Positions 2 to 21,538 are shown, counted from the first letter of the stretch. The stretch: 64,000 nucleotides of DNA from Paraphysomonas bandaiensis (GCA_965644295.1 CBFFRP010000136.1:62001-126000), one strand, 5' to 3'. The notes: generated by a model not told the origin, from the letters alone. Program-made: numbers and translations.

Positions 2-3000
2 ATTCCTAGTGGTGAACCAACGTCGATTCCCAGCGGGGAACCTTCAAGTGTTCCAAGTGGAGAGCCCACATCATTTCCGAGTGGGGAACCTAGTAGTATA
101 CCCAGTGGTGAGCCAACATCTCTTCCAAGTGGGGAACCGTCTAGTGTACCTAGCGGTGAGCCAAGTGCTGTTCCAAGTGGTGAACCTAGCAGTGTTCCTA
201 GTGGTGAGCCAAGTAGTGTTCCGACGGGCGAACCTAGCAGTGTACCAAGTGGAGAGCCTACATCTATTCCCAGTGGTGAACCTAGTAGTATTCCCAGCGG
301 TGAGCCAACATCTCTTCCAAGTGGGGAACCTAGCAGTATTCCTAGCGGTGAGCCAAGCGCAGTTCCAAGTGGTGAACCCAGCGGTATTCCAAGTGGAGAA
401 CCATCAAGTATTCCAAGTGGAGAGCCGTCAGCTCTTCCGAGCGGTGAACCTAGCAGTATTCCTAGTGGAGAGCCAAGTGCTGTTCCAAGTGGTGAGCCAA
501 GTGGTACACCAACGGGGGAACCAAGTAGTATTCCTAGTGGTGAACCAACGTCGATTCCCAGCGGGGAACCTTCAAGTGTTCCAAGTGGAGAGCCCACATC
601 ACTTCCGAGTGGGGAACCTAGTAGTATACCCAGTGGTGAGCCAACATCTCTTCCAAGTGGGGAACCGTCTAGTGTACCTAGCGGTGAGCCAAGTGCTGTT
701 CCAAGTGGTGAACCTAGCAGTGTTCCTAGTGGTGAGCCGAGTAGTGTACCTAGCGGTGAGCCAAGTGCTGTTCCAAGTGGAGAGCCTACATCTCTTCCAA
801 GTGGTGAACCTAGTAGTATTCCCAGCGGTGAGCCAACATCTCTTCCAAGTGGAGAACCTAGCAGTATTCCTAGCGGTGAGCCAAGCGCAGTTCCAAGTGG
901 TGAACCCAGCGGTATTCCAAGTGGAGAACCATCAAGTATTCCAAGTGGAGAGCCGTCAGCTCTTCCGAGCGGTGAACCTAGCAGTATTCCTAGTGGTGAG
1001 CCAAGTGCTGTTCCAAGTGGTGAGCCAAGTGGTACACCAACGGGGGAACCAAGTAGTATTCCTAGTGGTGAACCAACGTCGATTCCCAGCGGGGAACCTT
1101 CAAGTGTTCCAAGTGGAGAGCCCACATCACTTCCGAGTGGGGAACCTAGTAGTATACCCAGTGGCGAGCCAACATCTCTTCCAAGTGGGGAACCGTCTAG
1201 TGTACCTAGCGGTGAGCCAAGTGCTGTTCCAAGTGGTGAACCTAGCAGTGTTCCTAGTGGTGAGCCAAGTAGTGTACCTAGCGGTGAGCCAAGTGCTGTT
1301 CCAAGTGGAGAGCCTACATCTATTCCCAGTGGTGAACCTAGTAGTATTCCCAGCGGTGAGCCAACATCTCTTCCAAGTGGGGAACCTAGCAGTATTCCTA
1401 GCGGTGAGCCAAGCGCAGTTCCAAGTGGTGAACCCAGCGGTATTCCAAGTGGAGTACCATCAAGTATTCCAAGTGGAGAGCCGTCAGCTCTTCCTAGTGG
1501 TGAGCCAAGTGCTGTTCCAAGTGGTGAGCCAAGTGGTACACCAACGGGGGAACCAAGTAGTATTCCTAGTGGTGAACCAACGTCGATTCCCAGCGGGGAA
1601 CCTTCAAGTGTTCCAAGTGGAGAGCCCACATCACTTCCGAGTGGGGAACCTAGTAGTATACCCAGTGGCGAGCCAACATCTCTTCCAAGTGGGGAACCGT
1701 CTAGTGTACCTAGCGGTGAGCCAAGTGCTGTTCCAAGTGGTGAACCTAGCAGTGTTCCTAGTGGTGAGCCGAGTAGTGTACCTAGCGGTGAGCCAAGTGC
1801 TGTTCCAAGTGGAGAGCCTACATCTATTCCCAGTGGTGAACCTAGTAGTATTCCCAGCGGTGAGCCAACATCTCTTCCAAGTGGGGAACCTAGCAGTATT
1901 CCTAGCGGTGAGCCAAGCGCAGTTCCAAGTGGTGAACCCAGCGGTATTCCAAGTGGAGTACCATCAAGTATTCCAAGTGGAGAGCCGTCAGCTCTTCCGA
2001 GTGGTGAGCCAAGTGCTGTTCCAAGTGGTGAGCCAAGTGGTACACCAACGGGGGAACCAAGTAGTATTCCTAGTGGTGAACCAACGTCGATTCCCAGCGG
2101 GGAACCTTCAAGTGTTCCAAGTGGAGAGCCCACATCACTTCCGAGTGGGGAACCTAGTAGTATACCCAGTGGTGAGCCAACATCTCTTCCAAGTGGGGAA
2201 CCGTCTAGTGTACCTAGCGGTGAGCCAAGTGCTGTTCCAAGTGGTGAACCTAGCAGTGTTCCTAGTGGTGAGCCAAGTAGTGTTCCGACGGGCGAACCTA
2301 GCAGTGTACCAAGTGGAGAGCCTACATCTATTCCCAGTGGTGAACCTAGTAGTATTCCCAGCGGTGAGCCAACATCGATTCCCAGCGGGGAACCTTCAAG
2401 TGTTCCAAGTGGAGAGCCCACATCACTTCCCAGTGGGGAACCTAGTAGTATACCCAGTGGCGAGCCAACATCTCTTCCAAGTGGGGAACCGTCTAGTGTA
2501 CCTAGCGGTGAGCCAAGTGCTGTTCCAAGTGGTGAACCTAGCAGTGTTCCTAGTGGTGAGCCGAGTAGTGTACCTAGCGGTGAGCCAAGTGCTGTTCCAA
2601 GTGGAGAGCCTACATCTATTCCCAGTGGTGAACCTAGTAGTATTCCCAGCGGTGAGCCAACATCTCTTCCAAGTGGGGAACCTAGCAGTATTCCTAGCGG
2701 TGAGCCAAGCGCAGTTCCAAGTGGTGAACCCAGCGGTATTCCAAGTGGAGTACCATCAAGTATTCCAAGTGGAGAGCCGTCAGCTCTTCCGAGTGGTGAG
2801 CCAAGTGCTGTTCCAAGTGGTGAGCCAAGTGGTACACCAACGGGGGAACCAAGTAGTATTCCTAGTGGTGAACCAACGTCGATTCCCAGCGGGGAACCTT
2901 CAAGTGTTCCAAGTGGAGAGCCCACATCACTTCCGAGTGGGGAACCTAGTAGTATACCCAGTGGTGAGCCAACATCACTTCCGAGTGGGGAACCGTCTAG

Positions 3001-6000
3001 TGTACCTAGCGGTGAGCCAAGTGCTGTTCCAAGTGGTGAACCTAGCAGTGTTCCTAGTGGTGAGCCAAGTAGTGTTCCGACGGGCGAACCTAGTAGTGTA
3101 CCCAGTGGAGAGCCTACATCTATTCCCAGTGGTGAACCTAGTAGTATTCCCAGCGGTGAGCCAACATCTCTTCCAAGTGGGGAACCTAGCAGTATTCCTA
3201 GCGGTGAGCCAAGCGCAGTTCCAAGTGGTGAACCCAGCGGTATTCCAAGTGGAGTACCATCAAGTATTCCAAGTGGAGAGCCGTCAGCTCTTCCGAGTGG
3301 TGAGCCAAGTGCTGTTCCAAGTGGTGAGCCAAGTGGTACACCAACGGGGGAACCAAGTAGTATTCCTAGTGGTGAACCAACGTCGATTCCCAGCGGGGAA
3401 CCTTCAAGTGTTCCAAGTGGAGAGCCCACATCACTTCCAAGTATTGAACCTAGTAGTATACCCAGTGGTGAGCCAACATCTCTTCCAAGTGGGGAACCGT
3501 CTAGTGTACCTAGCGGTGAGCCAAGTGCTGTTCCAAGTGGTGAACCTAGCAGTGTTCCTAGTGGTGAGCCAAGTAGTGTTCCGACGGGCGAACCTAGTAG
3601 TGTACCCAGTGGAGAGCCTACATCTATTCCCAGTGGTGAACCTAGTAGTATTCCCAGCGGTGAGCCAACATCTCTTCCAAGTGGGGAACCTAGCAGTATT
3701 CCTAGCGGTGAGCCAAGCGCAGTTCCAAGTGGTGAACCCAGCGGTATTCCAAGTGGGGTACCATCAAGTATTCCAAGTGGAGAGCCGTCAGCTTCTCCGA
3801 GCGGTGAACCTAGCAGTATTCCTAGTGGTGAGCCAAGTGCTGTTCCAAGTGGTGAGCCAAGTGGTATACCAACGGGGGAACCAAGTAGTATTCCTAGTGG
3901 TGAACCAACGTCGATTCCCAGCGGGGAACCTTCAAGTGTTCCAAGTGGAGAGCCCACATCACTTCCGAGTGGGGAACCTAGTAGTATACCCAGTGGTGAG
4001 CCAACATCTCTTCCAAGTGGGGAACCGTCTAGTGTACCTAGCGGTGAGCCAAGTGCTGTTCCAAGTGGTGAACCTAGCAGTGTTCCTAGTGGTGAGCCAA
4101 GTAGTGTTCCGACGGGCGAACCTAGCAGTGTACCAAGTGGAGAGCCTACATCTATTCCCAGTGGTGAACCTAGTAGTATTCCCAGCGGTGAGCCAACATC
4201 TCTTCCAAGTGGGGAACCTAGCAGTATTCCTAGCGGTGAGCCAAGCGTAGTTCCAAGTGGTGAACCCAGCGGTATTCCAAGTGGAGAACCATCAAGTATT
4301 CCAAGTGGAGAGCCGTCAGCTCTTCCGAGCGGTGAACCTAGCAGTATTCCTAGTGGTGAGCCAAGTGCTGTTCCAAGTGGTGAGCCAAGTGGTATACCAA
4401 CGGGGGAACCAAGTAGTATTCCTAGTGGTGAACCAACGTCGATTCCCAGCGGGGAACCTTCAAGTGTTCCAAGTGGAGAGCCCACATCACTTCCGAGTGG
4501 GGAACCTAGTAGTATACCCAGTGGTGAGCCAACATCTCTTCCAAGTGGGGAACCGTCTAGTGTACCTAGCGGTGAGCCAAGTGCTGTTCCAAGTGGTGAA
4601 CCTAGCAGTGTTCCTAGTGGTGAGCCAAGTAGTGTTCCGACGGGCGAACCTAGCAGTGTACCAAGTGGAGAGCCTACATCTATTCCCAGTGGTGAACCTA
4701 GTAGTATTCCCAGCGGTGAGCCAACATCTCTTCCAAGTGGGGAACCTAGCAGTATTCCTAGCGGTGAGCCAAGCGCAGTTCCAAGTGGTGAACCCAGCGG
4801 TATTCCAAGTGGAGAACCATCAAGTATTCCAAGTGGAGAGCCGTCAGCTCTTCCGAGCGGTGAACCTAGCAGTATTCCTAGTGGTGAGCCAAGTGCTGTT
4901 CCAAGTGGTGAGCCAAGTGGTATACCAACGGGGGAACCAAGTAGTATTCCTAGTGGTGAACCAACGTCGATTCCCAGCGGGGAACCTTCAAGTGTTCCAA
5001 GTGGAGAGCCCACATCACTTCCGAGTGGGGAACCTAGCAGTGTTCCTAGCGGTGAGCCAAGTAGTGTTCCGACGGGCGAACCTAGCAGTGTACCAAGTGG
5101 AGAGCCTACATCTATTCCCAGTAGTGAACCTAGTAGTATTCCCAGCGGTGAGCCAACATCTCTTCCAAGTGGGGAACCTAGCAGTATTCCTAGCGGTGAG
5201 CCAAGCGCAGTTCCAAGTGGTGAACCCAGCGGTATTCCAAGTGGAGAACCATCAAGTATTCCAAGTGGAGAGCCGTCAGCTCTTCCGAGCGGTGAACCTA
5301 GCAGTATTCCTAGTGGTGAGCCAAGTGCTGTTCCAAGTGGTGAGCCAAGTGGTATACCAACGGGGGAACCAAGTAGTATTCCTAGTGGTGAACCAACGTC
5401 GATTCCCAGCGGGGAACCTTCAAGTGTTCCAAGTGGAGAGCCCACATCACTTCCGAGTGGGGAACCTAGTAGTATACCCAGTGGTGAGCCAACATCTCTT
5501 CCAAGTGGGGAACCGTCTAGTGTACCTAGCGGTGAGCCAAGTGCTGTTCCAAGTGGTGAACCTAGCAGTGTTCCTAGTGGTGAGCCAAGTAGTATTCCGA
5601 CGGGCGAACCTAGTAGTGTACCAAGTGGAGAGCCTACATCTATTCCCAGTGGTGAACCTAGTAGTATTCCCAGCGGTGAGCCAACATCTCTTCCAAGTGG
5701 GGAACCTAGCAGTATTCCTAGCGGTGAGCCAAGCGCAGTTCCAAGTGGTGAACCCAGCGGTATTCCAAGTGGAGAACCATCAAGTATTCCAAGTGGAGAG
5801 CCGTCAGCTCTTCCGAGCGGTGAACCTAGCAGTATTCCTAGTGGTGAGCCAAGTGCTGTTCCAAGTGGTGAGCCAAGTGGTATACCAACGGGGGAACCAA
5901 GTAGTATTCCTAGTGGTGAACCAACGTCGATTCCCAGCGGGGAACCTTCAAGTGTTCCAAGTGGAGAGCCCACATCACTTCCGAGTGGGGAACCTAGTAG

Positions 6001-7800
6001 TATACCCAGTGGTGAGCCAACATCTCTTCCAAGTGGGGAACCGTCTAGTGTACCTAGCGGTGAGCCAAGTGCTGTTCCAAGTGGTGAACCTAGCAGTGTT
6101 CCTAGTGGTGAGCCAAGTAGTGTTCCGACGGGCGGACCTAGCAGTGTACCAAGTGGAGAGCCTACATCTATTCCCAGTGGTGAACCTAGTAGTATTCCCA
6201 GCGGTGAGCCAACATCTCTTCCAAGTGGGGAACCTAGCAGTATTCCTAGCGGTGAGCCAAGCGCAGTTCCAAGTGGTGAACCCAGCGGTATTCCAAGTGG
6301 AGAACCATCAAGTATTCCAAGTGGAGAGCCGTCAGCTTTTCCGAGCGGTGAACCTAGCAGTATTCCTAGTGGTGAGCCAAGTGCTGTTCCAAGTGGTGAG
6401 CCAAGTGGTACACCAACGGGGGAACCAAGTAGTATTCCTAGTGGTGAACCAACGTCGATTCCCAGCGGGGAACCTTCAAGTGTTCCAAGTGGAGAGCCCA
6501 CATCACTTCCAAGTATTGAACCTAGTAGTATACCCAGTGGTGAGCCAACATCTCTTCCAAGTGGGGAACCGTCTAGTGTACCTAGCGGTGAGCCAAGTGC
6601 TGTTCCAAGCGGCGAACCGAGTGGTGTTCCCACGGGCGAACCATCTAGTGTTCCCAGTGGGAAGCCGTCATCTCTTCCAAGTGGTCAGCCAAGCGGTTTT
6701 CCGTCCGGTGAACCTAGTAGTATTCCCAGTGGTGAGCCGACATCTCTTCCAAGTGGGGAGCCGTCAAGCGTACCTAGTGGTGAGCCAAGTGCTGTTCCTA
6801 GTGGGATACCATCTAGTTTTCCAAGTTGTGAGCCAACGTCGGTTCCAAGTGGTGAACCTAGCAGTATTCCGAGCAGTGAACCATCATGTGCTCCGAGTGT
6901 TGAACCAACGTCTTTTCCAAGTGGTGGACCAAGCAGTGTACCTAGCGGACAACCGTCTTGCGTTCCTAGTGGTGAGCCTAGTAGTATTCCTAGCAGACAA
7001 CCATCTGGTATTCCCAGTGGTAAGCCATCTTGTGTTCCAAGCGGAGTACCATCTGGTGTGCCTACTGGGGAGCCATCAGGTATTCCAAGTAGTGAGCCAA
7101 GTGCTATTCCTACAGGCAAACCTACTGGTGTTCCAAGTAATGAACCTAGCAGTATTCCAAGTGGTGAACCTAGTAATATACCTACTGGAGAGCCATCTAG
7201 TGTTCCAAGTTTTAAACCTAGCGGCATTCCTAGTTGTGAACCATCTTGTGCTCCAAGTGGAGAGCCATCTAGCCGCCCTAGTGGTGAGCCTAGTAGTGTT
7301 CCTAGTTATGAACCATCAAGCATGCCCAGTGGTGAGCCGACATCTACTCCAAGTAGTGAACCAACATGTATTCCAAGTGGAAACCCTAGCAGTATTCCAA
7401 GTGGAGTACCATCAAGTGTTCCAAGTGGTGAGCCTACATCAGTTCCCAGCGAAAAACCATCAGGTGTTCCTAGTGCTGTGCCGACGTCTGTTCCAAGTGG
7501 AGAGCCATCTAGTGTACCCAGTTATGGGCCGACATCTGTTCCAAGTGTAATACCAAGCGGTGGGCCTAGCAGTATTCCCAGTGGGGATCCATCAAGTGTT
7601 CCCAGTGTTGAGCCGAGCAGTGTTCCCAGTGGGGAACCATCAAGTGTTCCTAACAGTGAACCGAGTGGTGTTCCAAGTGGACATCCGTCTTGTGTTCCAA
7701 GTGGAGAACCATCTTGTGTTCCAAGTGGAGAGCCATCTGGTTTCCCGACGGGTGTACCGTCTCGACTTCCCTCTGGATTACCCAGCTGTTTTCCATCCAG
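2..7800 (+). repeat. Coding tandem repeat: 24-bp unit (octapeptide PSGEP[S/T][S/A/G][I/V/L]) organised into a 528-bp higher-order repeat
   Basis: The marker TATTCCTAGTGGTGAACCAACGTCG recurs at 1, 529, 1057, 1561, 2065, 2857, 3361, 3889, 4417, 4945, 5377, 5905, 6433. Spacings are 528/504/792/432, all multiples of 24. The array degenerates after ~6600. Confidence 0.97.
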
Positions 7801-10800
7801 TTTACCCTCGGGGTTTCCTACTGGTATTCCATCCGGAGATCCTACTGGAATACCGTCTAGTTTGCCATCCTCATTGCCATCTGTGCTACCAACGTCTCCA
7901 ACGAGTTATCCTTCTGGAGTTCCCACAGCTGTACCAAGTTCTATTCCGACATGTAGTCCATCATCTCCGTCCAGTATGCCTAGCTCTTCACCTACATCAC
8001 CATCTGCTGTGCCGACGTTTCTACCGACGTCTACTCCGTCATGGTCACCCAGTTCTTTACCGTCTGAGGTTCCTACTACGGTTCCTTCGACTACACCAAG
8101 TAGTTTTCCTACCGACTTACCTACCCACGTCCCAACTATTGTGGACGTCACTCTCGATGTGTACGTTTGCGTGGCAGCGAACATTTCTATAGTCAATGTG
8201 TCCAACGACGATTTGTACGATTCTTTGTCAGTGGCAGCGGTCAAGTTGGGGCTTTCTGAATCTACAGGGATAGAACAAAGTTTAATTCAGTACGATATTG
8301 ATCCAACAACATTATGTCCAACTGGTGTGTTCATTGAAATCCGTACTCTTCTATGATCTAATATTGTATACAGTTGAGGAAAGAGACGAGGTTGAGAGTA
8401 ACATTAAAAGGAAACTGTCTGAAATTAGAGGCGAAATGCACTTTTCTATTCAGGGTTCACTTCATGGTAAGATTTCTCTTTGTGCGACATCGTTTTGACT
8501 TTTTTCAGATTCTGGTCTCTCTACTAGGGATGATTTGGGTAGTTTTCTAGCCACCACACTTGACCAGGCAGTTGTAAGCGGAGAATTTTCGAAGAAACTG
8601 ACCGCTGCTGTGGTATATCAATGGAATTGCTTTGTATTTGTTTGTAAGGATTTAATCGACAGGATATTCTTAATGCTACGAAACTATCGCACCCAAAATC
8701 ACGTGCTGCGTTGTCAGAAATAAGAAAAGTGTCAAGAAAAGATGCAGTGATATATCGTCAGCCATTTCCAACGCTAGCGCCGACATCGAGCGTACCAACC
8801 TTAGGACCGACGACGAGTTACCCCACTGGAGTACCGACTTTGCGACCTTCGTTTGGAAATATTCCCTATACCACAAACGACACACCCTTTTTAATGGCCA
8901 TCGGCATAGGGGTTCCGTTGGCCTGTGGATTTTGTGGTATGGAGTGCTATAGTTCTGTCTTCGCATTAACTTCGTTGCCAGGTTTTTTGATTTTTATATT
9001 TGTCTTTTGGCGACCAAACAAAAAGAAGTCGTCAGTTTATGTGACATCATGTGACGATTCTACAAGGTTCGATGGTATTTTCACTTAGTATGCCTATAAC
9101 GATCATGTAGGCTCCACTCCACTGTAAGAAAAGAGAAGGACTTGAAATTAAAGTATGTGTTTAATTTTGCTCCATTATACAGTTAATATATTTGCTATAG
9201 ACATTGCTTTCAAGCAGAAGAATTACCTAGTCCATCATCAGAACGTACCCCGCCATCAAATGTTATTCAGGAGCATATATCTTTTCCGGGTGAGTACTTT
9301 AGATACATAGTTTGGGATGACTTACACTTGGGTTAGTAGGAATTGTGAATAAAGCTTTTTTGTTTATCAAGCCACATGCGAACATACCACCCGTTAGGGC
9401 ACTTGTTCGGGATTGGTTGTGCTCGAAAGGAATGAAAATTTCTGGATATGGTATTATCGCAGGGAAAAGTCTCGCTAGGAGTATTCATAGACAGTATGCC
9501 GAGATTGGCAGAAAAGCTCTGCTTCTAAAAGCGCATGACTACTCGTTATCTTCAAGTGCACTAATCAGTTTTCAGAAAAAGTTTGGTATGAGTTGGTCCG
9601 AAGCTGTGGAAAGAGGCATGGTGCGGAATGCTATGGATACTTGCGCGATGCTGGACTTAAGCGACAGCGATCTGAGTAAAGCATGGTTGACTTGTTCATC
9701 AAATGGACTTGTATTGAAAATGGGGCAAGGTTTCTATTGCGGACTCATAAACATTTTCCCAGACAGAGGTCCTATATTCTGCGTAAATGGGTTTTATCCT
9801 GCCATGTATGCTGAATATGCCTCACCGAATGCATCCGTATATTATTTATCTGTGGAATGGCATGACAATTTGATGTCATGGGTTCATTTTCGATCGCACG
9901 TTGTGGGGTTTACGGACCCAAGTCATGCTCACCCAGATTCTCTGAGAAGTGTAATTATGATGGAGTGGAAGGAATTATCTCTAACGTCACCGCTTAATAT
10001 TCAAGACAACGCAATTCATGCCTCATCATCAGCATTTGAAGCATTTGCTGAAAGGTGTAATTGGCTCAATGATCCGTGGATGAATGATCCCTTAGGGTCA
10101 AGATTATATTCTCTGGGCTTAACACCTCACGTTATAAGAGATTGGATTGATAATACTAGTTTCCGTGGTAAACCTATATTTGATCATATGAAGAATTTAG
10201 GGTGTCAAGAATGTTTGTCATTGATACAGAACATGTTTTCTATTGCCACAGGTCCGTGTATATACCTTAATCGCTGTGTGCTTTTACTCTCGTTTCAGTG
10301 CTACATACTCCGAATTCTGCTACATCCACAGCGCTACATCCACAATCCCAAGGTTACACTTTGATATCTGTTTTTATTTCACTATATAATTTCATTCTTA
10401 GGCAAAGAAATTGGTTCCAGATTGTTGAGGCGAAACCACGCCTTTTTGTACTTCAAACCAGATGCCTGTATCTCCACAGTGATTAAATATGTTCGTGATT
10501 TTCTTGTAACCAGAGGATTTTCTGTAGCGAGTGAAGGCGATATATCTGCCAGCACGATTGAGAAAGAATGTTTAATTGATAGACAGTATGCTACTATTGC
10601 AAGAAGCTCAACGTTACTGAAACCTTCAGAACTAAAGCTTAACGCACCGGCATTCATTCGATTTCAAAAGAAATTCGGAAGTAGTTGGTCAGATGCCATT
10701 AATGAAAACAAAGTATTCAATGCTGTCGATGCTGCGTCGGTTCTATCTGTGAATTATAAAGAGTTATATGCCGCGTGGCTGGAGTGTGTTGAAAGTGGAA

Positions 10801-12001
10801 AGATGATAAAGTTGGGCCATGGCATGTATTGTGGTATGTTGACATCAGCAAAGGACACCGGGCATATATTCTGTATAAACGGCTTTTACATGGAAATGCG
10901 CGCGAAATATATTGCTCGGGCGGTATCAGTACATTACTTTTGTGTTGAGTGGGATAATGAGTTAATGAGTTGGGAAACATTCAACAGGAAAGTGGTGGGG
11001 TCCACAAACCCAAGTGTCGCACACAGTGAATCGATTCGTGCAGTGTTGGCAGCTGCATGGAAGGATTTGGGATTGTCATCTCCCCTCAATATGGAAAGCA
11101 ATGCAGTTCATGCGTCTGCTTCAGCGTTTGAAGCTATGGCTGAAAGAAGTTTATGGCTGAGCTGCCCGATTGAATCTGATGTACTTGGTAGCCTTCTGTT
11201 GTCTCGAGGAATTTCGCTGCAGGTTCTAAAGAATTGGATACAAAATCCTATTGAAGGAGGCACGAGTGTATTTGAACGCATGTTGAATAAAGGTACTGAA
11301 GCTTGTATCGATGAAAGTCTATTGCTGGTAAACCGATCAGGTGCGAAGTCTATTATATATAATACTATTTATTTTGACTTGATACTAGACACCATAATGT
11401 TGAGTCCTTCCCCGACATCTCTTCCACCACTTCATCGCGGGCGCACATTGCCACCTCTACGGCAAGTTCAAGCTCAAGGTAATGTCATTTAGTTACATAT
11501 ATTTCGTTTGATGACTTCAATGAAGGTGGACCTCCCGAGTATGCCAGCAGAACGAATGCACACCCTGATTTCTGTGGTGGACGATATGACGATATTGTCA
11601 GCGATGCATGCGAAGATAGCCAAGTTAAACTGAAGTCAGATGGATATAGATATTCATCAGAGGAGGATTATAATTATTCACCTTCTCAGAGGCCATATTC
11701 ATCAAGAACTCATATGTCGAAGTTACAAAATGACATCGACACGAGGCCCCTAAGGAGAGGTAGAGTTGAACATGTGTCGCGAATGAGTTATGCAAGGAGA
11801 TCGCAGTATTCACCGCAGGATAATACACAGTTCAAGAAACCGAGGATATACATGGAGCGGAGTTCTCGCTCTCGTGGTCGTATTGATGACAGAGATCGAG
11901 ATATTAGTTTGCCACTGGAGTCGAATAGACATTCATTGCGCCGTAAGAATCGAAGCAGGAGCAGCAGTAAGAAAAGCCCTGAACGAATATTGACAGTTTA
12001 G
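2..12001 (+). CDS. 5'-truncated giant single-pass membrane protein: PSGEPSS(I/V) mucin-like ectodomain + juxtamembrane domain + TM helix + two NDPK-like domains + RS-rich tail (12 exons visible)
   Basis: Frame +2 is open from base 2 (IPSGEPTS...). Eleven GT-AG introns, each keeping the frame: 8325-8373, 8467-8508, 8613-8662, 8937-8981, 9067-9110, 9153-9200, 9290-9339, 10252-10298, 10353-10401, 11341-11388, 11479-11525. Spliced TM is [26 protein letters not shown] followed by RPNKKK. NDPK motifs: FIKPHA/YFKPDA, GxT(D/N)P, S(L/I)R, NA(I/V)HAS. Stop TAG at 11999-12001. Confidence 0.8.
9340..10251 (+). other. Exon encoding NDPK-like domain 1 (insert-containing protist type)
   Basis: AFLFIKPHA ... 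RQY ... [11 protein letters not shown] ... SLRSVI ... [21 protein letters not shown]; His codon at 10017-10019. Confidence 0.88.
10402..11340 (+). other. Exon encoding NDPK-like domain 2
   Basis: AFLYFKPDA ... IDRQY ... [11 protein letters not shown] ... SIRAVL ... [21 protein letters not shown]; His codon at 11109-11111; clearly paralogous to domain 1. Confidence 0.88.
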
Positions 12002-12429
12002 ACATTTAATATAGAAACTACCTCTGTATATGAAAGTAGGTGCGGTAGTTACCTTTTGTATATAACATGACTGCAATTTAATTGTATGAATATGTATTTG
12101 CCTAAATAGAACAAATTGGCATTATCGAAGTAATAAATTTGTAACATATATTGATACTATTGTGTAACAAACGGTTCCGTATCGAACATCAGACAGTAGT
12201 ATCCTAGCAGATAATCGGAAAAGTAAACCTTTTCTATGCCAATGAATTTTATATTGTTACTACAAATATAATAACGCCCAACTCATTATGATAACATATA
12301 TATATTCGTGTGACACAACAGGAGAATATATCACATAATGGCGTCGGGTCTAGAGAGAATATCTGATTATTACATGAGAACGGTTGTGTACAGAAACTAG
12401 TTTTACATCTCTATGCTAACTAATAACTG

Positions 12430-13360
12430 GGCTTGCTATATACTACTAGTGGCGGGCATCCATCTCGGGACTGCTTGTGCATCGCTGCGAGCACCATAGT
12501 GCAACCGTCCCTTGCAGTGAGGTTAGTCGGGGGGTCTGTCTTTGGGCAGTGTGTCTGGCGGGCCTGTGTCATGGCTTTTACGGGGGATGGTTGGGGCTAG
12601 GTGTATATGAGAATGCAAGTCGGTGGAGGAGATGGTGCTGGTTGTCGAGGTAGGATTTCTGCCATAGATAAAGAGGAGTTGTTTCCGGAGTGGTGGCGCT
12701 TGTCGCTGTCAGATTCGGACTCTCGCAGAGGATAGTGTTCTTGGGGTGGATGTCGCTTGGAGTAGTTGGAGTGTTTTCAGTGTTGGGTGAGTGTCCTGTG
12801 ACTGACGTTGCTGTGAGTGTGGTGGGGTCGTAATCGTTGTTACTGGTGCCGTGTCTGTGTTGTGATGTCTGAGACCTCTGTTTTGAAGCATGCGGAGCCT
12901 TCCGTCATATATATAGGAGAAGGAGGATAGAGGTTACGGATTTTTCGACGACGTGGAACTGATGTTCGGACAGTGAGCTGGATATGTGGCGTCCGAATGC
13001 GTCGGCCAATTGTGTGGCAGTAATGTCGCCGGTCCAGTAGCGCTCAATCTAGGGTGTGTGTGGATTCCATGCGGCTTTTGCTAGTTTGGTTATGGCGGTG
13101 TGAAACCAGGGATGGGGTAGCGTGTGTGTGCAAAGTTTGTCAAGCTTGCTGTGGTGTGCTTGGTAAGCGTCTTCACGTATTTGAGTGAGGTCCGGTTATG
13201 TGCAGGTGAGAGGCATGTGCGCCATGTTGTCTTTTGGGTGCGCACAGTCTGCGCAAGCTGAGACCGTTATGTGATCATGCCCGGTTCTTCCTTTGGCTCG
13301 GTTTCTTCCCAGCGCATATGATTTGTCCCATACGTACGTTCTGGTAGGGAGATGGAGTAT
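12430..13360 (-). mobile_element. Decayed, 5'-truncated non-LTR retrotransposon (LINE ORF2 C-terminal region)
   Basis: Minus strand reads VWDKSYALGRNRAKG...CADCAHPKDNMAHMPLTC, a C-x2-C-x8-H-x4-C knuckle at 13202-13255. In-frame stops follow at 13196-13198 and 13049-13051. Strong A/C bias on the minus strand. Boundaries approximate. Confidence 0.7.
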
Positions 13361-13544
13361 TTGGAGGAGTTATGGGTACAGTTTCTGATTATGTATCACA
13401 GCTTTGGACAGGAATGAGTACGAGTACCACCAGCTCATCATAAAAGTCGTACTGATAAACACACAAATTATTAGCACAAGTATCATCTAACGGTGGGGTT
13501 CTTTCTGTTAGTAGAATAGACAGCAATTGTCGAATCTGTCCTTA

Positions 13545-13930
13545 CCAAGGCGCAACCACTTTCGCTCTATCACTCAAAGCAAACGCAGTGAGCAAGCAGA
13601 ATATTGATATACATGACATCATCTGCTGACTTCAGGATTTTTGAGTCCTCAAGGTGAACTAGCCCGGATTCTTAACTTCAGCAGGCAGCCCAATACCCCG
13701 GATGCCCTTCAGGGTAGCTGAATGAATGTTTGTACGTCAGGGGCCTCAAGACGTCTCTACAAAAGTGACACTTATTAGTGTCCTTAGTTCCACACATGCA
13801 TTTGACTATGAGTAAGCAGAACGATATCTGCTGTTTATGCTTGCGGTTCATGTTAGTTTCCGGGAGAAATATCTCCTGTACTTATCCTTTAGAACACCAC
13901 GACAAGGTGCAAGTCTGACTTTGTTGAAGG
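13545..13930. mobile_element. Copy A of a dispersed hairpin-rich inverted-repeat element
   Basis: 13545-13760 is homologous in reverse complement to 53981-54125 and 23423-23503; 13740-13930 is directly homologous to 54292-54482. Confidence 0.7.
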
Positions 13931-15836: not shown

Positions 15837-18800
15837 TCATTCACTATCTTCGCACCAACTATCTTCGTTACTGGATATATATACATCATCCACATCATCT
15901 AATAAGTCAGTATCGCTATTCCCTTCTGACAATCGTTCCCCACCAATCGATACTGTGTGATCTCCCCAACCTTTCTGACCATTAGACTCAACAACAAACT
16001 CATTATCACTTTCCAAATCATCTTTCGGATTATTAGCTTTATCATTCTCAGGATAGCGTAGGTCAACATTTACATCCCAGCTGCTTAACTCCTCACCAAA
16101 ATCGCGTTCTATCCATTCTGCAACACAGACTCTCTCATTCATTCGTGAGGAATGGATGGAATCGAACATTAAACTTGAGCAATAAAGCGCAGAAAGCCAA
16201 TCATGCTCGTGGACCAAATCATCAACATCTCGTTTCTCTATACAATAAGTGTGCATCCAGTTCATGATATTGGCACGAGCTTTGCCAGTATGAACACGCA
16301 TTTGAGGAACAGATCGTACTAATCCTTTAGGTAATGGATATAACGCTTTAACCATGTCATCTGTTAATGTTTGTGAAAGTGATTGTACAGAGTCTATGCA
16401 AAGTAAACACCATCCAAACACCGGATACAAAAAGTAGGGTGATGCCCAGTCCTGAGATTCGACTTTTAACTTCAAGTGCTGCCCAACACTGGTGTCACTA
16501 TTCATTGGAGTTGAGACAGAGGGATCTGCGTTGCATTGTTTATCCCGCCAAGCGAAGCAGGTTATCAGAACTGTCTCCAAAGACAAAATCACCGTTCTAC
16601 AGACCCGAACAACCAACGACGCCAACGATGCTACAGTATGCAAGTGCTTTCTCTGGACTATTATATGATCAAACTCCAATACAACAAAAACAAACAGTTG
16701 CATTGCATGAATAGCAGAAAAATATGGTCCCATATACAAGGCTTTATCTTTTTTCGACCGGTTACTGTTTGGTATCGTAGGGCGAGCTAGTACTAATATT
16801 GACGGAACAAAACACAGAGCAAAAGACAAGTACTTGGAGAAATTATTCGGTGACACGCGTCGTATTCTGGGCCCAGTCTTGTCATGCTTTCTAAATATTT
16901 CACAGGACATGTATAAATACGAATTTGGCTCAACTGATGTACTACCAGTGTATAAAGACTCCGCGACACCGTCGACTTCATTGTTGATATCCTCCGCACC
17001 CAAAGATTTGCTTCCACTACTTACACGTGTTCTTGTCTCAGCAGTACCACTTTCAGGAGTGAAACGAACAACTGGGCGCTTCGAGCGTGCAGTTCTTCGA
17101 AGTGATTGATAAGAACCATCAATTCGTTGTGAGTGTGATGACGCCAATGTCTCGTCCTCCACTGACTGTACAGTATCGCTGCTCCTGCTATGAAGTATAG
17201 CTTCCATAAGTACCAAAAACAAACCATACACACGGTGATCATAGCTTTTAGTGCTACACTCCGAATACCACCATTGAATAAAGCAAGCGCGGAATACTTG
17301 AAAAGATTCGTTCTCTGACATGTTAAATAAACTACTTGAAGGCCGTGCCTTTTCGCGGGGTGGTGATAAGGCTATATTCATCACAGCCTTACATTGGTTA
17401 ACTACCTTGGCAAAGTTACCCACACCTCTATAGGTATGTTTCCAATATACAGTCATCAAATCCCCTGGAAGAGAAAACAAATACTCTTTTAGCTGTTCTT
17501 TGAGAGTATTACTGACAACGGATGAACTCGCGTGTGGAAATATCGACTGAGGATTGAACTCATGAACTTCTTTCAAAAGACTCCACGCAAGAGAAGAAAT
17601 TCGGCGAGACAGTCGTGTGCCTTTAGTCAACAAGAAAAGGAATTTCATTCCTGTCAAAGAAACCACAGAATTGAGAGTTGAAACCACGTGCTGTTCTACA
17701 ATAGAATAAAAGTATACAAGTCTTTCTTCATGACTACAGTCTTCCATGTATTCTGATGAAGACACAAATCGGCTGCTACTCTTCTCTGTACGAATCTCAG
17801 AGACTTTCAACACCTGAAAATTGCACATAATAAAGTTCCGAATCATTTTATTGAAGATAGGAGAATCCACAAGGGATACAGAACTGTCCTGATCCCAAGC
17901 ACATTTCTCTGACACATACATATCAAGAGACATGTAGAGTATACTAATCAAAAGTGAATATCCATTATAGTCCAATAAACTACAAGGGAAATTATCCTCA
18001 TCCCCCCCCCCACACTGTAACTCAGGGCCACGAACTGTCCTCAGTCTCTCAGAAAGCAATCTCATAATCGGAAGAAGCGAGCACATATGAAAAAACGTTT
18101 CTTCTTGGGTAATAATATTGGAAGCATACATCATCGGTGTAGCAATATCAGTGCTGCTATAAGAACTTGATCCGGAAGGGGTAGAAAAATTTCCAGATAT
18201 ATTGAATTGAAATATGAACTCATCGTTATTTTGTACATCACATTTCTTGTGATTATAAGTAATCTCTCGATGCGCTGTAAACAGCTGACGACATATATAC
18301 GTCGCAATATACAACCCCATATTAGAAAATAGAGGACATGACACCTCAGTCAAGGCGTCTGATATTTCAAAGGAATTTTTCTTTGCAAGATTCACGCAAA
18401 CATTTGCCAACCTTTGGGGATCTGTAACTACTGTATCTAACGCGAGGTACTGCTTCATATGAACTACAGGCAAGTGGCATGTCATCCTATCTATGTCTTG
18501 GCTAAGTTGACATATCAAAATTTTTATTTTCTGCAACAGAAAGTCCTGTAAAGTGAAAGTAGAGGTAGAAACAAGGCACTTACATTTGAAATGTCACTGA
18601 TATCGCATCCTCCATTATTCTCACACACTTTTAAATTTGAAAATGATGTTCCGGCTTTTCGTTTTTTACCAAGCATTTTCATATCAGCTTGGTGTGGACC
18701 GTTTGTAGGTATAGAGTTCTTCCGAGTTGCTCCATTGAGACATACAGTCTCGCAGACTCTCAAAAAATGCCTAATACAAGCTCATCATAAGAATTTCCAT

Positions 18801-21538
18801 TTATATATCTCAGCATTACCTTGCTTGAGAAAAGAATGCAACACAACGACAGAGCAGTGAGTCCTCGTCTAGAGACTTACTAGCCCCACCCAAAAACAAA
18901 GTCACACCCGATCTCAAGTAGCCCATCAGCACTGACCCAGCAAGGCAAAATTCAAGCGCCAGCTGTAACGGTATGAGAGGGTCAGTGACTTTGCCCTGAT
19001 CAACACTCACGACTCCAGCTGCCGAAAACTCTTCCCAGCAACTGCGTACCTGCAGGATCTTATCATCCACACATGATGACACTGACTCGTGTGTCGAGAG
19101 TATTAAATGCACACATAATTTGCCAAACGTGCTATTCGATCGAAGAGCATACACACGCCCATGCACACAGGCGGCTCTATACGTCATCCAAACTAGAGAC
19201 CGGAGAGTGTAAGAAGCCGAAGAAGTTGTAGAACTAGATAGATTGCATCCGGACATCATATATTTGATCATATTCACAGATACACAGGCAAGTGAGTAGT
19301 CAATCATGGACAAATTGTGTTGTTCAAAATTATTAGCGGAATTGTGTAGATGTGAGAAGCCAAGATGAAATTCAGCCGTCGCAGTGGCATTCAATGCTTT
19401 CTCTCCTGCTTTCAATGCTTTCTCTCCCCTACACATAATCTTTAACTACAAAAGGACAAGGGCTTGTATAATCCCAGTGCATTGATAGTACCTGAAAAGG
19501 TTCGGGTATCCACTGCAAAAGTCATCCCAGCATACTTGTAGCGTTGACTGCAATTGACCAAAATACTCGCTCATGCTAGACCTATAATACGTAATATAAT
19601 GGCTAATTACTGTTATCACATTGGTAGACATACATGCGGGCCGAAATCACAGCAAGCACATCCAAAGCATATGCAACACTGTAATCTCTCCGTCTGCTCA
19701 CGCAGCGCTGAATCCAAGACAAGATCGCAGCCAAATCCTGGTTTACGAATGATTGGCTGCGTAGTAAGAGCATTTGATCAAACATGTATCCAGCGATGAG
19801 TACTCCAACTGCAGATCTGCTATACAATTGCTGTGAAGGAGGGAGGATGGCATCCTCAGTTCCAGCTTCAATTCGAAATACAGTGCCCGCTCCACTTCGC
19901 ACCATAAACCCCCCCTGACTAACAAGAATATGCTCAATAGCTGGGTCGGAGGGTGCAGATTGACCCAAGAGTTTCTGGATAACTATCAGCAGTGTGTTCT
20001 CCAACGAAGAAACTCTGCCAATTGATTTCGTGATACACATAATGATTCTGACACAAACGTGATATAAAAACGGAATAAACAAGATCTAGAGCACCTGTGA
20101 AGAACATATGGACAGGGAAGCTCTAACATATTAGTCTTGTACTGATTGTACCCGAACTTTTCAATACTTGGAGCATGAATCCTATCTATGAGTGATGTCA
20201 AAACCGACCCCACAGTTTCGAGATTTTCGGAGACAATGTTCTCCAAAATAACAACTGCATTTTTCGAAATAGCGAGACGATCTCTTAAATCTCGTTTTCC
20301 TCCGGCATAAGCGATCAATTTTTCAGCTAACACCACACGAACCGGAGGTAAGGACCTGCCAGTCCTCGCAGCTATCGGTAGTGGGGACAGAGACCCGTGA
20401 TGCTCACAGCCATAGCAATGGCGAATCAACGTCTTGACGATAGCTTCACGCAGCTCAACAGCGTGTCTATACACACTTTTGAATAAGGATATTACATCAC
20501 CCAATAAACCGTTGGGCTGTAGTGGCCACTGTCTCTCAGTATGAGCGGGAATAATGTGAGGCAATCGGTCCAATAACCAACCTGCCATTCGCCATATTCC
20601 GGGGATCATGAGAGACCAAACCTCGTTGCTGCTTCGCAACTTAATCACAGTTTTCAGAATACCGAAAGGAAAAACTTTACTAGCTAGCCACGCGCGAACA
20701 ATACGACTACAGACACTCGCAGTCCCGTCCGCACAGTCCCCAGAAAGAAACAACACTGCTGCAACGTCGAGAGTGTCAGGTTGAACTGGTGCTGTGCTAA
20801 TCGCCATCTTGTAAACCTGCGATAGCCATATATGTGCTGCCTTGGGACAAGCTGGTAGCGTCTCTCGCATAGCTTCTAACACCAGCGACAATGTAGACAT
20901 TGGCAGAGGTGCTATCTAAACAACGAATACTTTTACTCCGGACAAGGTAATGATACAGATACACAAATTACCTCTTCTCGTATTTTACGAATTATCCTAG
21001 CACCATCCACCTCAAATATGTTCTTAATTAGAACACGAAAGAGGAACGGTATATCTGATTCATCAACAACTGTTATGGCATCTTCAGCTAATTCAGCGAA
21101 ACGAAATCTCAATTGTGGAGACAAAGGCAAATCAATGAGAGCTGATATTACACATAAAATAAATCTGCTGTCAGAACAAGCAAGTGAATGAAGCTCTTCA
21201 AATGCCTCTTCTATTATAGCCGGTGATGCAACGCCAAAAATACTTGGAACGATCTCAATAAATGGTGACGGGTCACTGAATGAAGCCAAATGAGAGAGTA
21301 AAACCACTCCAACTTGAAGGTTCGATGATCCAATCTTCCTCACCAGAGCAGCAATAGAGCTTAATATAGAAGACTCTATATTATTATGTAAGATAACTGC
21401 ACTGAGTAAACTATCAATGATGTGTTCTGAGGCAGATGGATCTGATGATTCAAGGAGACAATGGGCCTCGTCAACAGCTACTTGAAGAGGCTTTTCATTC
21501 AACCATGATTTACAAATCTCGTAGAGGGAATTATCCAT
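15837..21538 (-). CDS. FANCD2: Divergent FANCD2-like helical-solenoid protein (multi-exon)
   Basis: Exon 1 (FIEIVPSIF...LCVISALIDLPLSPQ...VDESDIPFLFRVLI...IIRKIREE) resembles, from recall, human FANCD2 IITSLPEIL...PILDVLSSLRLD...RLEDLPVIIKFIL...VISELREK. LLIVIQKLL resembles the K561 motif MHLVIRKQL. In-frame introns include 20971-20916 and ~20094-20049. The C-terminal half is poorly recognisable. Confidence 0.6.

Follow-up and report, generated by a model that had tools for sequence, protein, structure and literature searches.

The first 12,001 nucleotides of the window, a 64,000-nucleotide stretch of a Paraphysomonas bandaiensis genome assembly (CBFFRP010000136.1:62001-126000), contained the 3' part of one gene on the + strand, which in this Paraphysomonas-type chrysophyte has 12 exons and yields one spliced mRNA. 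Frame +2 had no stop from base 2 until an unspliced stop at 8354-8356. An independent gene model led from this frame to the gene's stop codon at 11999-12001 through 11 introns, all of which were GT..AG, 42–50 nt long and frame-preserving, and added no stops. These were introns 1 (8325..8373, 49 nt), 2 (8467..8508, 42 nt), 3 (8613..8662, 50 nt), 4 (8937..8981, 45 nt), 5 (9067..9110, 44 nt), 6 (9153..9200, 48 nt), 7 (9290..9336, 47 nt, in its main form), 8 (10252..10298, 47 nt), 9 (10353..10401, 49 nt), 10 (11341..11388, 48 nt) and 11 (11479..11525, 47 nt).

All 11 joints were present within one 4,802-nt contig of transcriptome run X1 and, from a different study, within one 4,727-nt contig of run X3. 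A marine metatranscriptome (X4) contained 8 of the 11, among them those of introns 4 to 7. The DNA run X18 spanned the stretch unspliced, with 0 joints (that of intron 1 was thus also absent). Since the joints were found in RNA and not in DNA, the repeats, the transmembrane (TM) segment, both NDK-like exons and the tail belong to a single gene, as the initial annotation had proposed when it connected the repeats and the downstream open reading frames through 11 introns. Its junctions 9066/9111 and 9152/9201 were present in X1, X3 and X4. Only intron 7 required a correction. Its acceptor is a TAGTAG tandem (NAGNAG) of which both forms are in frame; the main RNA form in X1, X3 and X4 joined 9289 to 9337, whereas the predicted junction 9289/9340, which uses an acceptor 3 nt downstream (9290..9339, 50 nt), was found in X4. 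The view that the first NDK-like exon is not a separate gene was also upheld, as domain 1 has no ATG and starts in phase 1 right after the acceptor.

The X1 and X3 contigs began approximately 1.2 kb upstream of position 7950, within the repeats and short of the gene's 5' 17 kb, and reached 12074 and 11951, respectively. This RNA support consists of assembled contigs rather than single molecules and is compatible with extra internal starts. The 3' UTR extended to at least 12074-12155. A 525-aa peptide from the MMETSP1103 Paraphysomonas transcriptome (P0001) matched the gene with 100% identity and confirmed the last four junctions (introns 8 to 11) and the stop. The first residue of this peptide is a Met that lies within the last part of domain 1.

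Exon 1 started at C136:51478, 10,522 nt upstream of the window, and was 18,847 nt long (approximately 6,282 aa), a length taken from the genome assembly alone. The whole gene thereby has a CDS of approximately 22 kb encoding 7,335 aa. An in-frame stop lies one codon upstream of the ATG, and the N-terminus, MKLLAYLFLCVFISVQI, is a candidate signal peptide judged by eye. The part of exon 1 within the window carried octapeptide repeats of the type PSGEPSS[IV] at 2..7750, with a 24-nt period (TRF) and a higher-order period of approximately 528 nt. Across the whole exon there were 726 strict repeat units and 0 stops, and the composition was dominated by S (29.5%) and P (24.7%; S+P 54%), followed by G (13%) and E (11.4%). 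The Pro/Ser ectodomain of more than 2600 aa that had been predicted within the window was confirmed but proved far larger, with a repeat stalk of approximately 6,100 aa. The stalk is mucin-like, would be extended and is presumably O-glycosylated.

The strict repeats were followed by a degenerate P/S/T-rich stalk (7751..8143) and a juxtamembrane ecto-module of approximately 150 aa encoded by exons 1-4 (8144..8785), which aligned colinearly with the ecto regions of the related proteins P0045, P0167, P0168, P0066 and P0054. Its motifs include ..MHFSIQ, ..T.DDL..G.F and DILNATKL, and two sequons (ANIS and NAT) and a Cys pair (VCV..LCP) were kept in the relatives. The ecto-module had no match in Pfam, SEA included, and a search for homologues with residues 20-225 of P0045 recovered three proteins only. 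The AlphaFold model of the homologous ecto-module (alignment A3, 9 rows) had a pLDDT of 49, too low for a fold comparison.

A single hydrophobic span (8888..9010) was evident in the spliced sequence, where the joint of intron 4, which interrupts it, was seen in RNA. The TM segment of the paralogue C406 in the same genome and of the environmental loci L025 and L027 is likewise interrupted by an intron, and the homologous TM helices of relatives had Kyte-Doolittle values of 2.0-2.7 (19-residue window). The basic stop-transfer RPNKKK (9011-9028) directly follows the TM segment and precedes the motif VYV.S..D, a juxtamembrane motif common to P0040, P0045, P0054 and P0066. The single TM helix and the type I layout of the initial annotation were thus retained: a signal-like N-terminus, a single span with RPNKKK, and sequons and a Cys pair kept in relatives are consistent with this topology, as called from sequence and hydropathy.

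The cytoplasmic part contained two NDK-like domains, each encoded by a single phase 1-1 exon: domain 1 by exon 8 (9337..10251) and domain 2 by exon 10 (10402..11340). They were separated by an 18-codon linker, exon 9 (10299..10352), which was supported by the RNA joints and P0001. Exon 12 (11526..12001) encoded a charged, Arg/Ser/Asp/Tyr-rich C-terminal tail and the stop, in agreement with the RS tail noted earlier; no Pfam family was found in the tails of the gene and its relatives. For these searches, each exon was used singly, and spliced parts were represented by database proteins. HisKA, HATPase_c, protein-kinase and cyclase domains were not found by Pfam in the exons searched. Pfam NDK (PF00334) scored 16.5 bits for domain 1 (E 0.008) and 28.7 bits for domain 2, compared to a cut-off of 27, and the match was restricted to profile positions 83-131. 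In a profile search of the PDB, 13 of 14 matches were NDKs, all of them marginal (best E 0.029).

An NDK alpha/beta fold was predicted for the domains. The AlphaFold model of domain 2 had a pLDDT of 90 and a pTM of 0.82, and its best 50 Foldseek matches in the PDB were all NDKs (E 1e-4 to 1e-3, TM-score by target 0.57-0.79). With approximately 300 aa, the domain differs from the compact NDK subunit of approximately 150 aa by an insertion of approximately 100 aa (model residues ~57-125) and a C-terminal extension (~250-305). A contact between domains 1 and 2 was predicted with an ipSAE of 0.61, compared to 0.05 for the best control. Of 78 solved complexes, 51 reached this value, as did 2 of 108 mismatched pairs. 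In the predicted contact, a helix of domain 1 (residues 16-28) meets the FxKKFGxSW insertion of domain 2; at least 97% of contacts agreed between runs, the partner pLDDT was at least 89, and heterotypic and homotypic contacts were indistinguishable because the domains are paralogues.

Equivalents of K12, Y52, T94, R105, N115, H118, S120 and E129, the NDK active-site residues in human NME1 numbering, were present in both domains. The predicted catalytic His lies within N-x-x-H-(G/A)-S, as NAIHAS in domain 1 (His codon 10017-10019) and NAVHAS in domain 2 (11109-11111), with the Glu partner 11 residues on. In an alignment of 202 domains of the family, each active-site residue was kept in 161-192 domains, except for T94 (128); among them, the counts for H, N, S and E were 180, 183, 192 and 179, respectively. 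The catalytic His was lost in 22 domains, which belong to long multi-domain relatives. The R88 equivalent was variable in the family, and its position in domain 1 differed by one from that in domain 2. The initial annotation had described two NDPK domains; the predicted NDK fold and the catalytic His in both agree with this, but the domains are members of a divergent family of ~300-aa NDK-like domains and not canonical NDPK. Canonical NDK genes were located on C181 and C134 of the same genome, so the cell has other NDKs besides the giant protein.

The combination of a P/S/T-rich ectodomain, a juxtamembrane ecto-module, a TM helix and one to six NDK-like domains recurred in C406, in L025 and L027, and in approximately 10 database proteins (P0028, P0040, P0043, P0045, P0054, P0057, P0063, P0066, P0093, P0167 and P0168). 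In a phylogeny of the domains, domain 1 and domain 2 each grouped with their counterparts from C406 and L025/L027 (SH-aLRT 96-97), which indicates that the tandem pair predates these genes. The TM and no-TM labels of the tree are unreliable, as exon-level or truncated gene calls account for many of the no-TM rows. No paper on a TM + NDK protein was found among Creative-Commons papers and bioRxiv, and the same sources held nothing relevant on the NDK-like domain or on multi-NDK trypanosome proteins. The earlier statement that no described receptor of this kind was known therefore held for the literature searched, in which no characterised TM + NDK protein turned up, but the protein is not a one-off. 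It represents a real, conserved domain architecture that is undescribed in that literature.

Taken together, the gene probably encodes a type I membrane glycoprotein of approximately 7,335 residues, in which a membrane-tethered NDK-like pair acts via phospho-His under a surface coat. From the N-terminus, the protein would consist of a signal peptide, ~6,100 aa of repeats, the ~150-aa ecto-module, the TM helix, a linker of ~100 aa, two ~300-aa domains and the Arg/Ser tail. Both cytoplasmic domains may act through phospho-histidine, handing an NTP's gamma-phosphate on to an acceptor, whether an NDP or something else. The protein would therefore carry a phosphotransfer module on the cytoplasmic side of the plasma membrane, with a surface coat above it. 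The two domains probably pack together via the invariant FxKKFGxSW helix of the insertion. The functional unit would be the core of ecto-module, TM helix and NDK-like domains, and the repeat stalk would be an expansion specific to the lineage, given that the stalks of relatives range from none seen to ~6,100 aa. In the usual view, NDK/NME enzymes do housekeeping work as soluble or peripheral proteins, whereas their roles in signalling (GTP channelling to dynamin or G proteins, protein-His phosphorylation) are debated. A transcribed, conserved family with intact predicted active sites behind a TM helix would be a natural system in which to study membrane-localised NDK function. The acidic Pro/Ser repeat of 6,100 residues is also interesting with regard to the cell surface of a phagotrophic flagellate that carries scales.

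The gene's domains share with canonical group I NDK/NME (PF00334) the alpha/beta fold, the catalytic His motif and the Lys, Tyr, Thr, Arg, Asn, Ser and Glu ligands of nucleotide and phosphate. Unlike the soluble or peripheral canonical enzymes of ~150 aa, they are tethered to the membrane, are ~300 aa long with marginal sequence similarity, and carry a helical insertion of ~100 aa with the invariant FxKKFGxSW and a C-terminal helical extension of ~60 aa. Tandem or fused NDK-fold domains in larger proteins are also found in NME7, NME8/TXNDC3, NME9 and RP2. Those proteins are soluble or axonemal, with NDK domains of ~135 aa and neither TM nor ectodomain, and in group II NME arrays some domains are catalytically degenerate. 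The order of candidate signal peptide, long Pro/Ser/Thr repeats, juxtamembrane module, single TM and cytoplasmic tail resembles that of transmembrane mucins such as MUC1 and MUC16, whose juxtamembrane module is a SEA domain. In contrast to these mucins, the repeats are acidic with Glu in every unit, the juxtamembrane module has no Pfam SEA match, and the short tail is replaced by a cytoplasmic part of ~1,000 aa with two enzyme-like domains.

With its ectodomain, one TM and cytoplasmic enzyme-like domains, the protein follows the logic of receptor Tyr and Ser/Thr kinases and receptor guanylyl cyclases, and its putative phospho-His chemistry can be likened to that of two-component sensor His kinases, with an NDK fold instead of HisKA/HATPase_c. 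The initial annotation had gone further and suggested a putative signalling receptor or mechanosensor that could act by local GTP supply or as a protein-His kinase. If so, contact, a ligand or load on the stalk or ecto-module would alter the clustering of the NDK-like pair and thus switch its phospho-His output, either local GTP supply or protein-histidine phosphorylation. Distant relatives retained the ecto-module, the TM helix and the juxtamembrane motif along with the NDK-like domains, and such joint conservation outside and inside the membrane is expected if the two sides are functionally coupled. It is, however, equally expected for a constitutive anchor, and no ligand-binding domain was recognisable. 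The predicted contact between the domains is in line with a receptor, as canonical NDKs depend on oligomerisation, and elsewhere the family joins regulatory modules, such as the EF-hands in Bodo saltans CUF98075. On the other hand, whether NDKs act as protein-His kinases is disputed even in the case of NME1/2. Overall, we regard a true signalling receptor as unlikely. It is similarly doubtful that the proteins with ecto-module, TM and NDK-like domains form a new class of protist receptors in which surface events control a phospho-His module of the NDK type. Such a class would span chrysophytes and further lineages, would add a third receptor chemistry to protein-kinase and cyclase receptors, and would here have its sensor at the base of a micrometre-scale mucin stalk.

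Rather improbable is a structural role, in which the NDK-like domains would be non-catalytic nucleotide-binding or scaffold modules, as in the NDK-like C-terminal domain of RP2, and the protein a surface mucin or adhesin with a cytoskeletal or adaptor anchor. The ectodomain makes up the bulk of the protein's mass, the domains have strongly diverged from NDK, with the large insertion and the C-terminal extension, and the loss of His in 22 of 202 domains implies that the fold tolerates losing catalysis. Yet both domains of this gene keep K, Y, T, R, N, H, S and E, and most active-site columns are ~80-95% conserved family-wide (T94 ~63%), which argues for selection on catalysis. That two or more genes, a repeat protein and a soluble NDK-like protein, were joined by read-through or an assembly artefact is extremely unlikely and was rejected: the RNA evidence consists of contigs and P0001 has its own Met, but the joints, canonical and frame-preserving, came from three RNA data sets of separate studies, domain 1 opens at an acceptor without an ATG, and the order of TM, linker and domain is also found in C406, L025, L027 and the uninterrupted homologous proteins P0045 and P0167.

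The NDK-like family is not confined to these membrane proteins: it counts ~2,600 cluster representatives, with as many as 9 domains in one array, and its members come from kinetoplastids, dinoflagellates, diatoms and chrysophytes. The ~300-aa domain, often 2-9 in tandem, is found in CUF98075, in Trypanosoma theileri XP_028879250 and in dinoflagellate and diatom proteins. Most of the long members listed have no TM, and the ecto-module and TM occur in a subset only. The proteins described here and their relatives would define this large, unannotated family. A further paralogue in the same genome, C354, combines an NDK-like domain with a DHH phosphoesterase domain.

In the window, frame +2 remained free of stops from base 2 to 8353. 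The encoded octapeptides were of the PSGEPSS(I/V) type, and TRF gave a repeat unit of 24 nt. The octapeptide array decayed to a P/S/T-rich stretch from approximately 7750, which was followed by a non-repetitive segment from approximately 8144. An independent derivation from the DNA and its three forward frames yielded 11 GT..AG introns of 42–50 nt, and their removal placed all downstream coding pieces in one frame, stop-free up to 11999–12001. Both NDK-like exons, exon 8 (9337..10251, domain 1) and exon 10 (10402..11340, domain 2), were verified as phase 1-1.

In a sequencing-run search, runs labelled 'organism A' contained 73–76% of the sampled words and DNA-like runs 95%; approximately 78% was estimated for a fully spliced mRNA of the searched stretch. 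Reads were placed on positions 7950–12250. RNA run X1 gave a single 4,802-nt contig with all 11 joints and a 3' end at 12074, and X3, an RNA run from a different study, gave a single 4,727-nt contig, also with 11 of 11 joints, ending at 11951. Every joint in both contigs was GT..AG, and both contigs started within the repeats, approximately 1.2 kb upstream of 7950. The marine metatranscriptome X4 contained 8 of the 11 joints, and the DNA run X18 spanned the stretch from end to end as a single piece that contained 0 joints. When the domain-2 exon was searched against the protein collection, the top match was a 525-aa Paraphysomonas transcriptome peptide (MMETSP1103; P0001) with 100% identity, which extended from the end of the domain-1 exon over the last four junctions and terminated at the same stop. 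The joints in X1, X3 and X4 together with P0001 therefore confirmed that the repeats, the transmembrane (TM) helix and the NDK-like exons constitute one gene running through 11 canonical introns, as the initial annotation had claimed; the RNA evidence consists of assembled contigs and is compatible with extra internal starts. Two junctions that had been named as critical, 9066/9111 and 9152/9201, were present in X4. The third, 9289/9340, was also present there, but the main acceptor of intron 7 lay 3 nt upstream, with the exon starting at 9337. This acceptor is a TAGTAG tandem (NAGNAG, 9335–9340) whose two forms differ by one codon (Val), both in frame; X1 and X3 mainly used the upstream AG, and X4 contained both forms. 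Single-base differences from the window were found in every covering run, including the DNA run, at 9135, 10112, 11084 and 11584 (G>C, T>A, C>T and A>G), and in the DNA run only at 8362. They represent strain variation or else errors in the assembly.

In 20 kb retrieved upstream of the window (C136:62001–126000) from the same contig, the open frame extended to C136:51475. An ATG at C136:51478, one codon past a stop, began a sequence reading MKLLAYLFLCVFISVQITIVD, which was judged signal-peptide-like. Exon 1 thus comprised 18,847 nt (approximately 6,282 aa); it contained 726 strict octapeptide units and was rich in S (29.5%), P (24.7%), G (13%) and E (11.4%). Summed over all exons, the CDS was 22,008 nt (7,335 aa), with the exon-1 repeat length being that of the assembly alone; the RNA contigs cover the 3' part of the gene, and its 5' 17 kb are predicted from genomic sequence. 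The array (window positions 2–7750 plus 10.5 kb upstream) had a higher-order period of approximately 528 nt, or 22 units, and its self-identity of 0.74 at that lag points to a recent expansion through unequal exchange.

Splicing of intron 4 created a continuous hydrophobic span followed by RPNKKK; a Cys pair and the sequons ANIS, NVS, NAT and NDT lay in the segment preceding this span. Read from the sequence, these features and the signal-like N-terminus fit a type I protein (N-out, C-in) and support the membrane architecture initially proposed.

This architecture was not unique to the gene. In a paralogue on contig C406 of the same genome (C406:165825-170100, minus strand), with two NDK-like exons 52–53% identical to those of the window, the exons upstream of domain 1 encoded ..LYLAIIIGTSLAVGFVG and ..FVSALICFGLIVYWKKRMKG, a TM helix interrupted by an intron. 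The paralogue had a 418-aa tail and, in the upstream part covered, only a short P/S/T-rich stretch. Two environmental loci (L025 and L027) likewise encoded an intron-split TM helix, a preceding P/T-rich exon, two NDK-like exons and a long tail. A hydropathy scan over 161 retrieved proteins singled out about ten (P0028, P0040, P0043, P0045, P0054, P0057, P0063, P0066 and P0093) in which a strong TM helix preceded the first of 1–6 NDK-like domains and the N-terminal part was P/S/T-rich. The extracellular regions of P0045, P0054, P0066, P0167 and P0168 aligned colinearly with the juxtamembrane segment of exons 1–4 (8144..8785, approximately 150 aa), sharing the pattern VxVCVxANxS..LYD..STGI..LCP..NFxI..T.(E/D)EL..G.F..AV..YNATxL; P0167 also contained PSGEPS-type repeats. 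Distant members, too, had a basic cluster and then (V/I)Y(V/I)x(D/S) following the TM helix. In a quick maximum-likelihood tree, domain 1 of the window grouped with domain 1 of C406 and L025, and domain 2 with domain 2 of C406, L025 and L027 (SH-aLRT 96–97 for both), so the tandem pair is older than these genes. The TM/no-TM labels of the tree were unreliable because many rows were truncated gene calls.

Similarity of the domains to NDKs was weak at the sequence level. Pfam NDK matched profile positions 83–131 only, with 16.5 bits for domain 1 (E 0.008) and 28.7 bits for domain 2 (E 1.4e-6; cut-off 27), and a 15-member family profile searched against PDB sequences retrieved NDKs as 13 of 14 matches, all marginal (E 0.03–0.3). 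An AlphaFold model of domain 2 (pLDDT 90, pTM 0.82) had NDKs as all of its best 50 Foldseek matches in the PDB (target-normalised TM-score 0.57–0.79), so the domain is predicted to be an NDK fold enlarged to approximately 300 aa. The model contained a C-terminal helical extension as well as a helical insertion (approximately residues 57–125), which bears an invariant F..KKFG.SW motif. Both domains contained equivalents of the NME1 active-site residues K12, Y52, T94, R105, N115, H118, S120 and E129. In an alignment of the window's two domains with 200 others taken from 139 database proteins (202 in total), H was kept in 180, N in 183, S in 192, R105 in 191 and E in 179; most columns were 80–95% conserved, and T94 was kept in 128. 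The R88 equivalent was offset between domains 1 and 2 and variable across the family. From this conservation, both domains are likely catalytically competent. A reading of the domains as a non-catalytic scaffold is less likely, as the conserved active site counts against it.

The gene is thus transcribed and encodes a protein of conserved type I layout, whose two NDK-fold domains are predicted to face the cytoplasm. Both domains would act via a phospho-His intermediate, an activity that the protein may hold at the plasma membrane beneath its very long, acidic and mucin-like stalk. The core would be the conserved extracellular module, the TM helix and the NDK-like domains, with the repeat stalk as a lineage-specific expansion; the output could be controlled from outside (receptor) or constitutive (anchor). 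The domains resemble NDKs in predicted fold and presumed mode of action, and the two NDPK domains initially annotated stand in that respect. However, they are not compact subunits and their Pfam scores are marginal, and they are therefore best filed as divergent NDK-superfamily members in an unnamed family. The outer layout resembles that of transmembrane mucins, but the extracellular module was modelled with a pLDDT of 49 and no SEA domain was shown. Pfam identified no protein-kinase, cyclase or two-component domain in the exons searched. Searches and models were run on single exons, with database proteins in place of parts that span splice junctions. The initial annotation knew of no such receptor; no paper on TM-anchored NDK-type proteins was found in the Creative-Commons and bioRxiv literature, so that a conserved single-pass membrane layout with NDK-fold enzymes is undescribed in the literature searched, yet the layout is shared by the paralogue, both environmental loci and the proteins of the hydropathy scan.

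An exhaustive profile search retrieved 2,600 cluster representatives at E <= 0.001, 679 of these at <= 1e-30; Pfam has no dedicated model for this family of approximately 300-aa domains. Many members had 2–9 matched stretches, the longest of these proteins reaching 3,282 aa. They included dinoflagellate transcripts (Gymnodinium smaydae, Polykrikos kofoidii) and kinetoplastid arrays with 7–8 long domains per protein, namely Bodo saltans CUF98075 (P0016; 2,366 aa, 8 stretches, C-terminal EF-hands) and Trypanosoma theileri XP_028879250 (P0018; 2,516 aa). Some domains of such arrays lacked the catalytic His, and no paper on these two proteins was found. ESM Atlas neighbours were 'hypothetical protein' clusters; the two nearest were mainly eukaryotic, with Bacillariophyta the commonest phylum in one, and a third was recorded as mainly bacterial. 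The P. bandaiensis genome contained 11 NDK-like domains (12 matched pieces) across six genes: two each in the window's gene, the C406 paralogue and a gene on C39, one each in genes on C200 and C182, and three, nearly identical, in an intronless gene on C354 (134185-139026, minus strand; 1,614 aa). In the latter they were followed by a C-terminal DHH phosphoesterase domain (PF01368, E 2.2e-8), a fusion that suggests a role of the family in nucleotide or phosphate metabolism. Canonical NDK genes were located on C181 and C134.

Complex prediction with the domain-1 and domain-2 exons gave an ipSAE of 0.61 (best control 0.05); of 78 solved complexes, 51 attained the ipSAE mark, as did 2 of 108 mismatched pairs. 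At least 97% of contacts were shared between runs, with partner pLDDT of at least 89, and the predicted interface placed domain-1 helix 16–28 and residues 204–212 against the domain-2 insertion (78–97, the invariant FxKKFGxSW region). Since the partners are paralogues, the prediction supports contact between domains of the family, not necessarily in the domain 1/domain 2 pairing.

Directly past the 3' UTR, positions 12400–13600 had a strong G-skew (GC skew 0.27–0.33) at a GC content of approximately 0.5. A large adjoining gene on the minus strand (15837–21538) was convergent with the gene described here; its open frames of 899, 206, 159, 304 and 201 aa are probably exons of a single gene.
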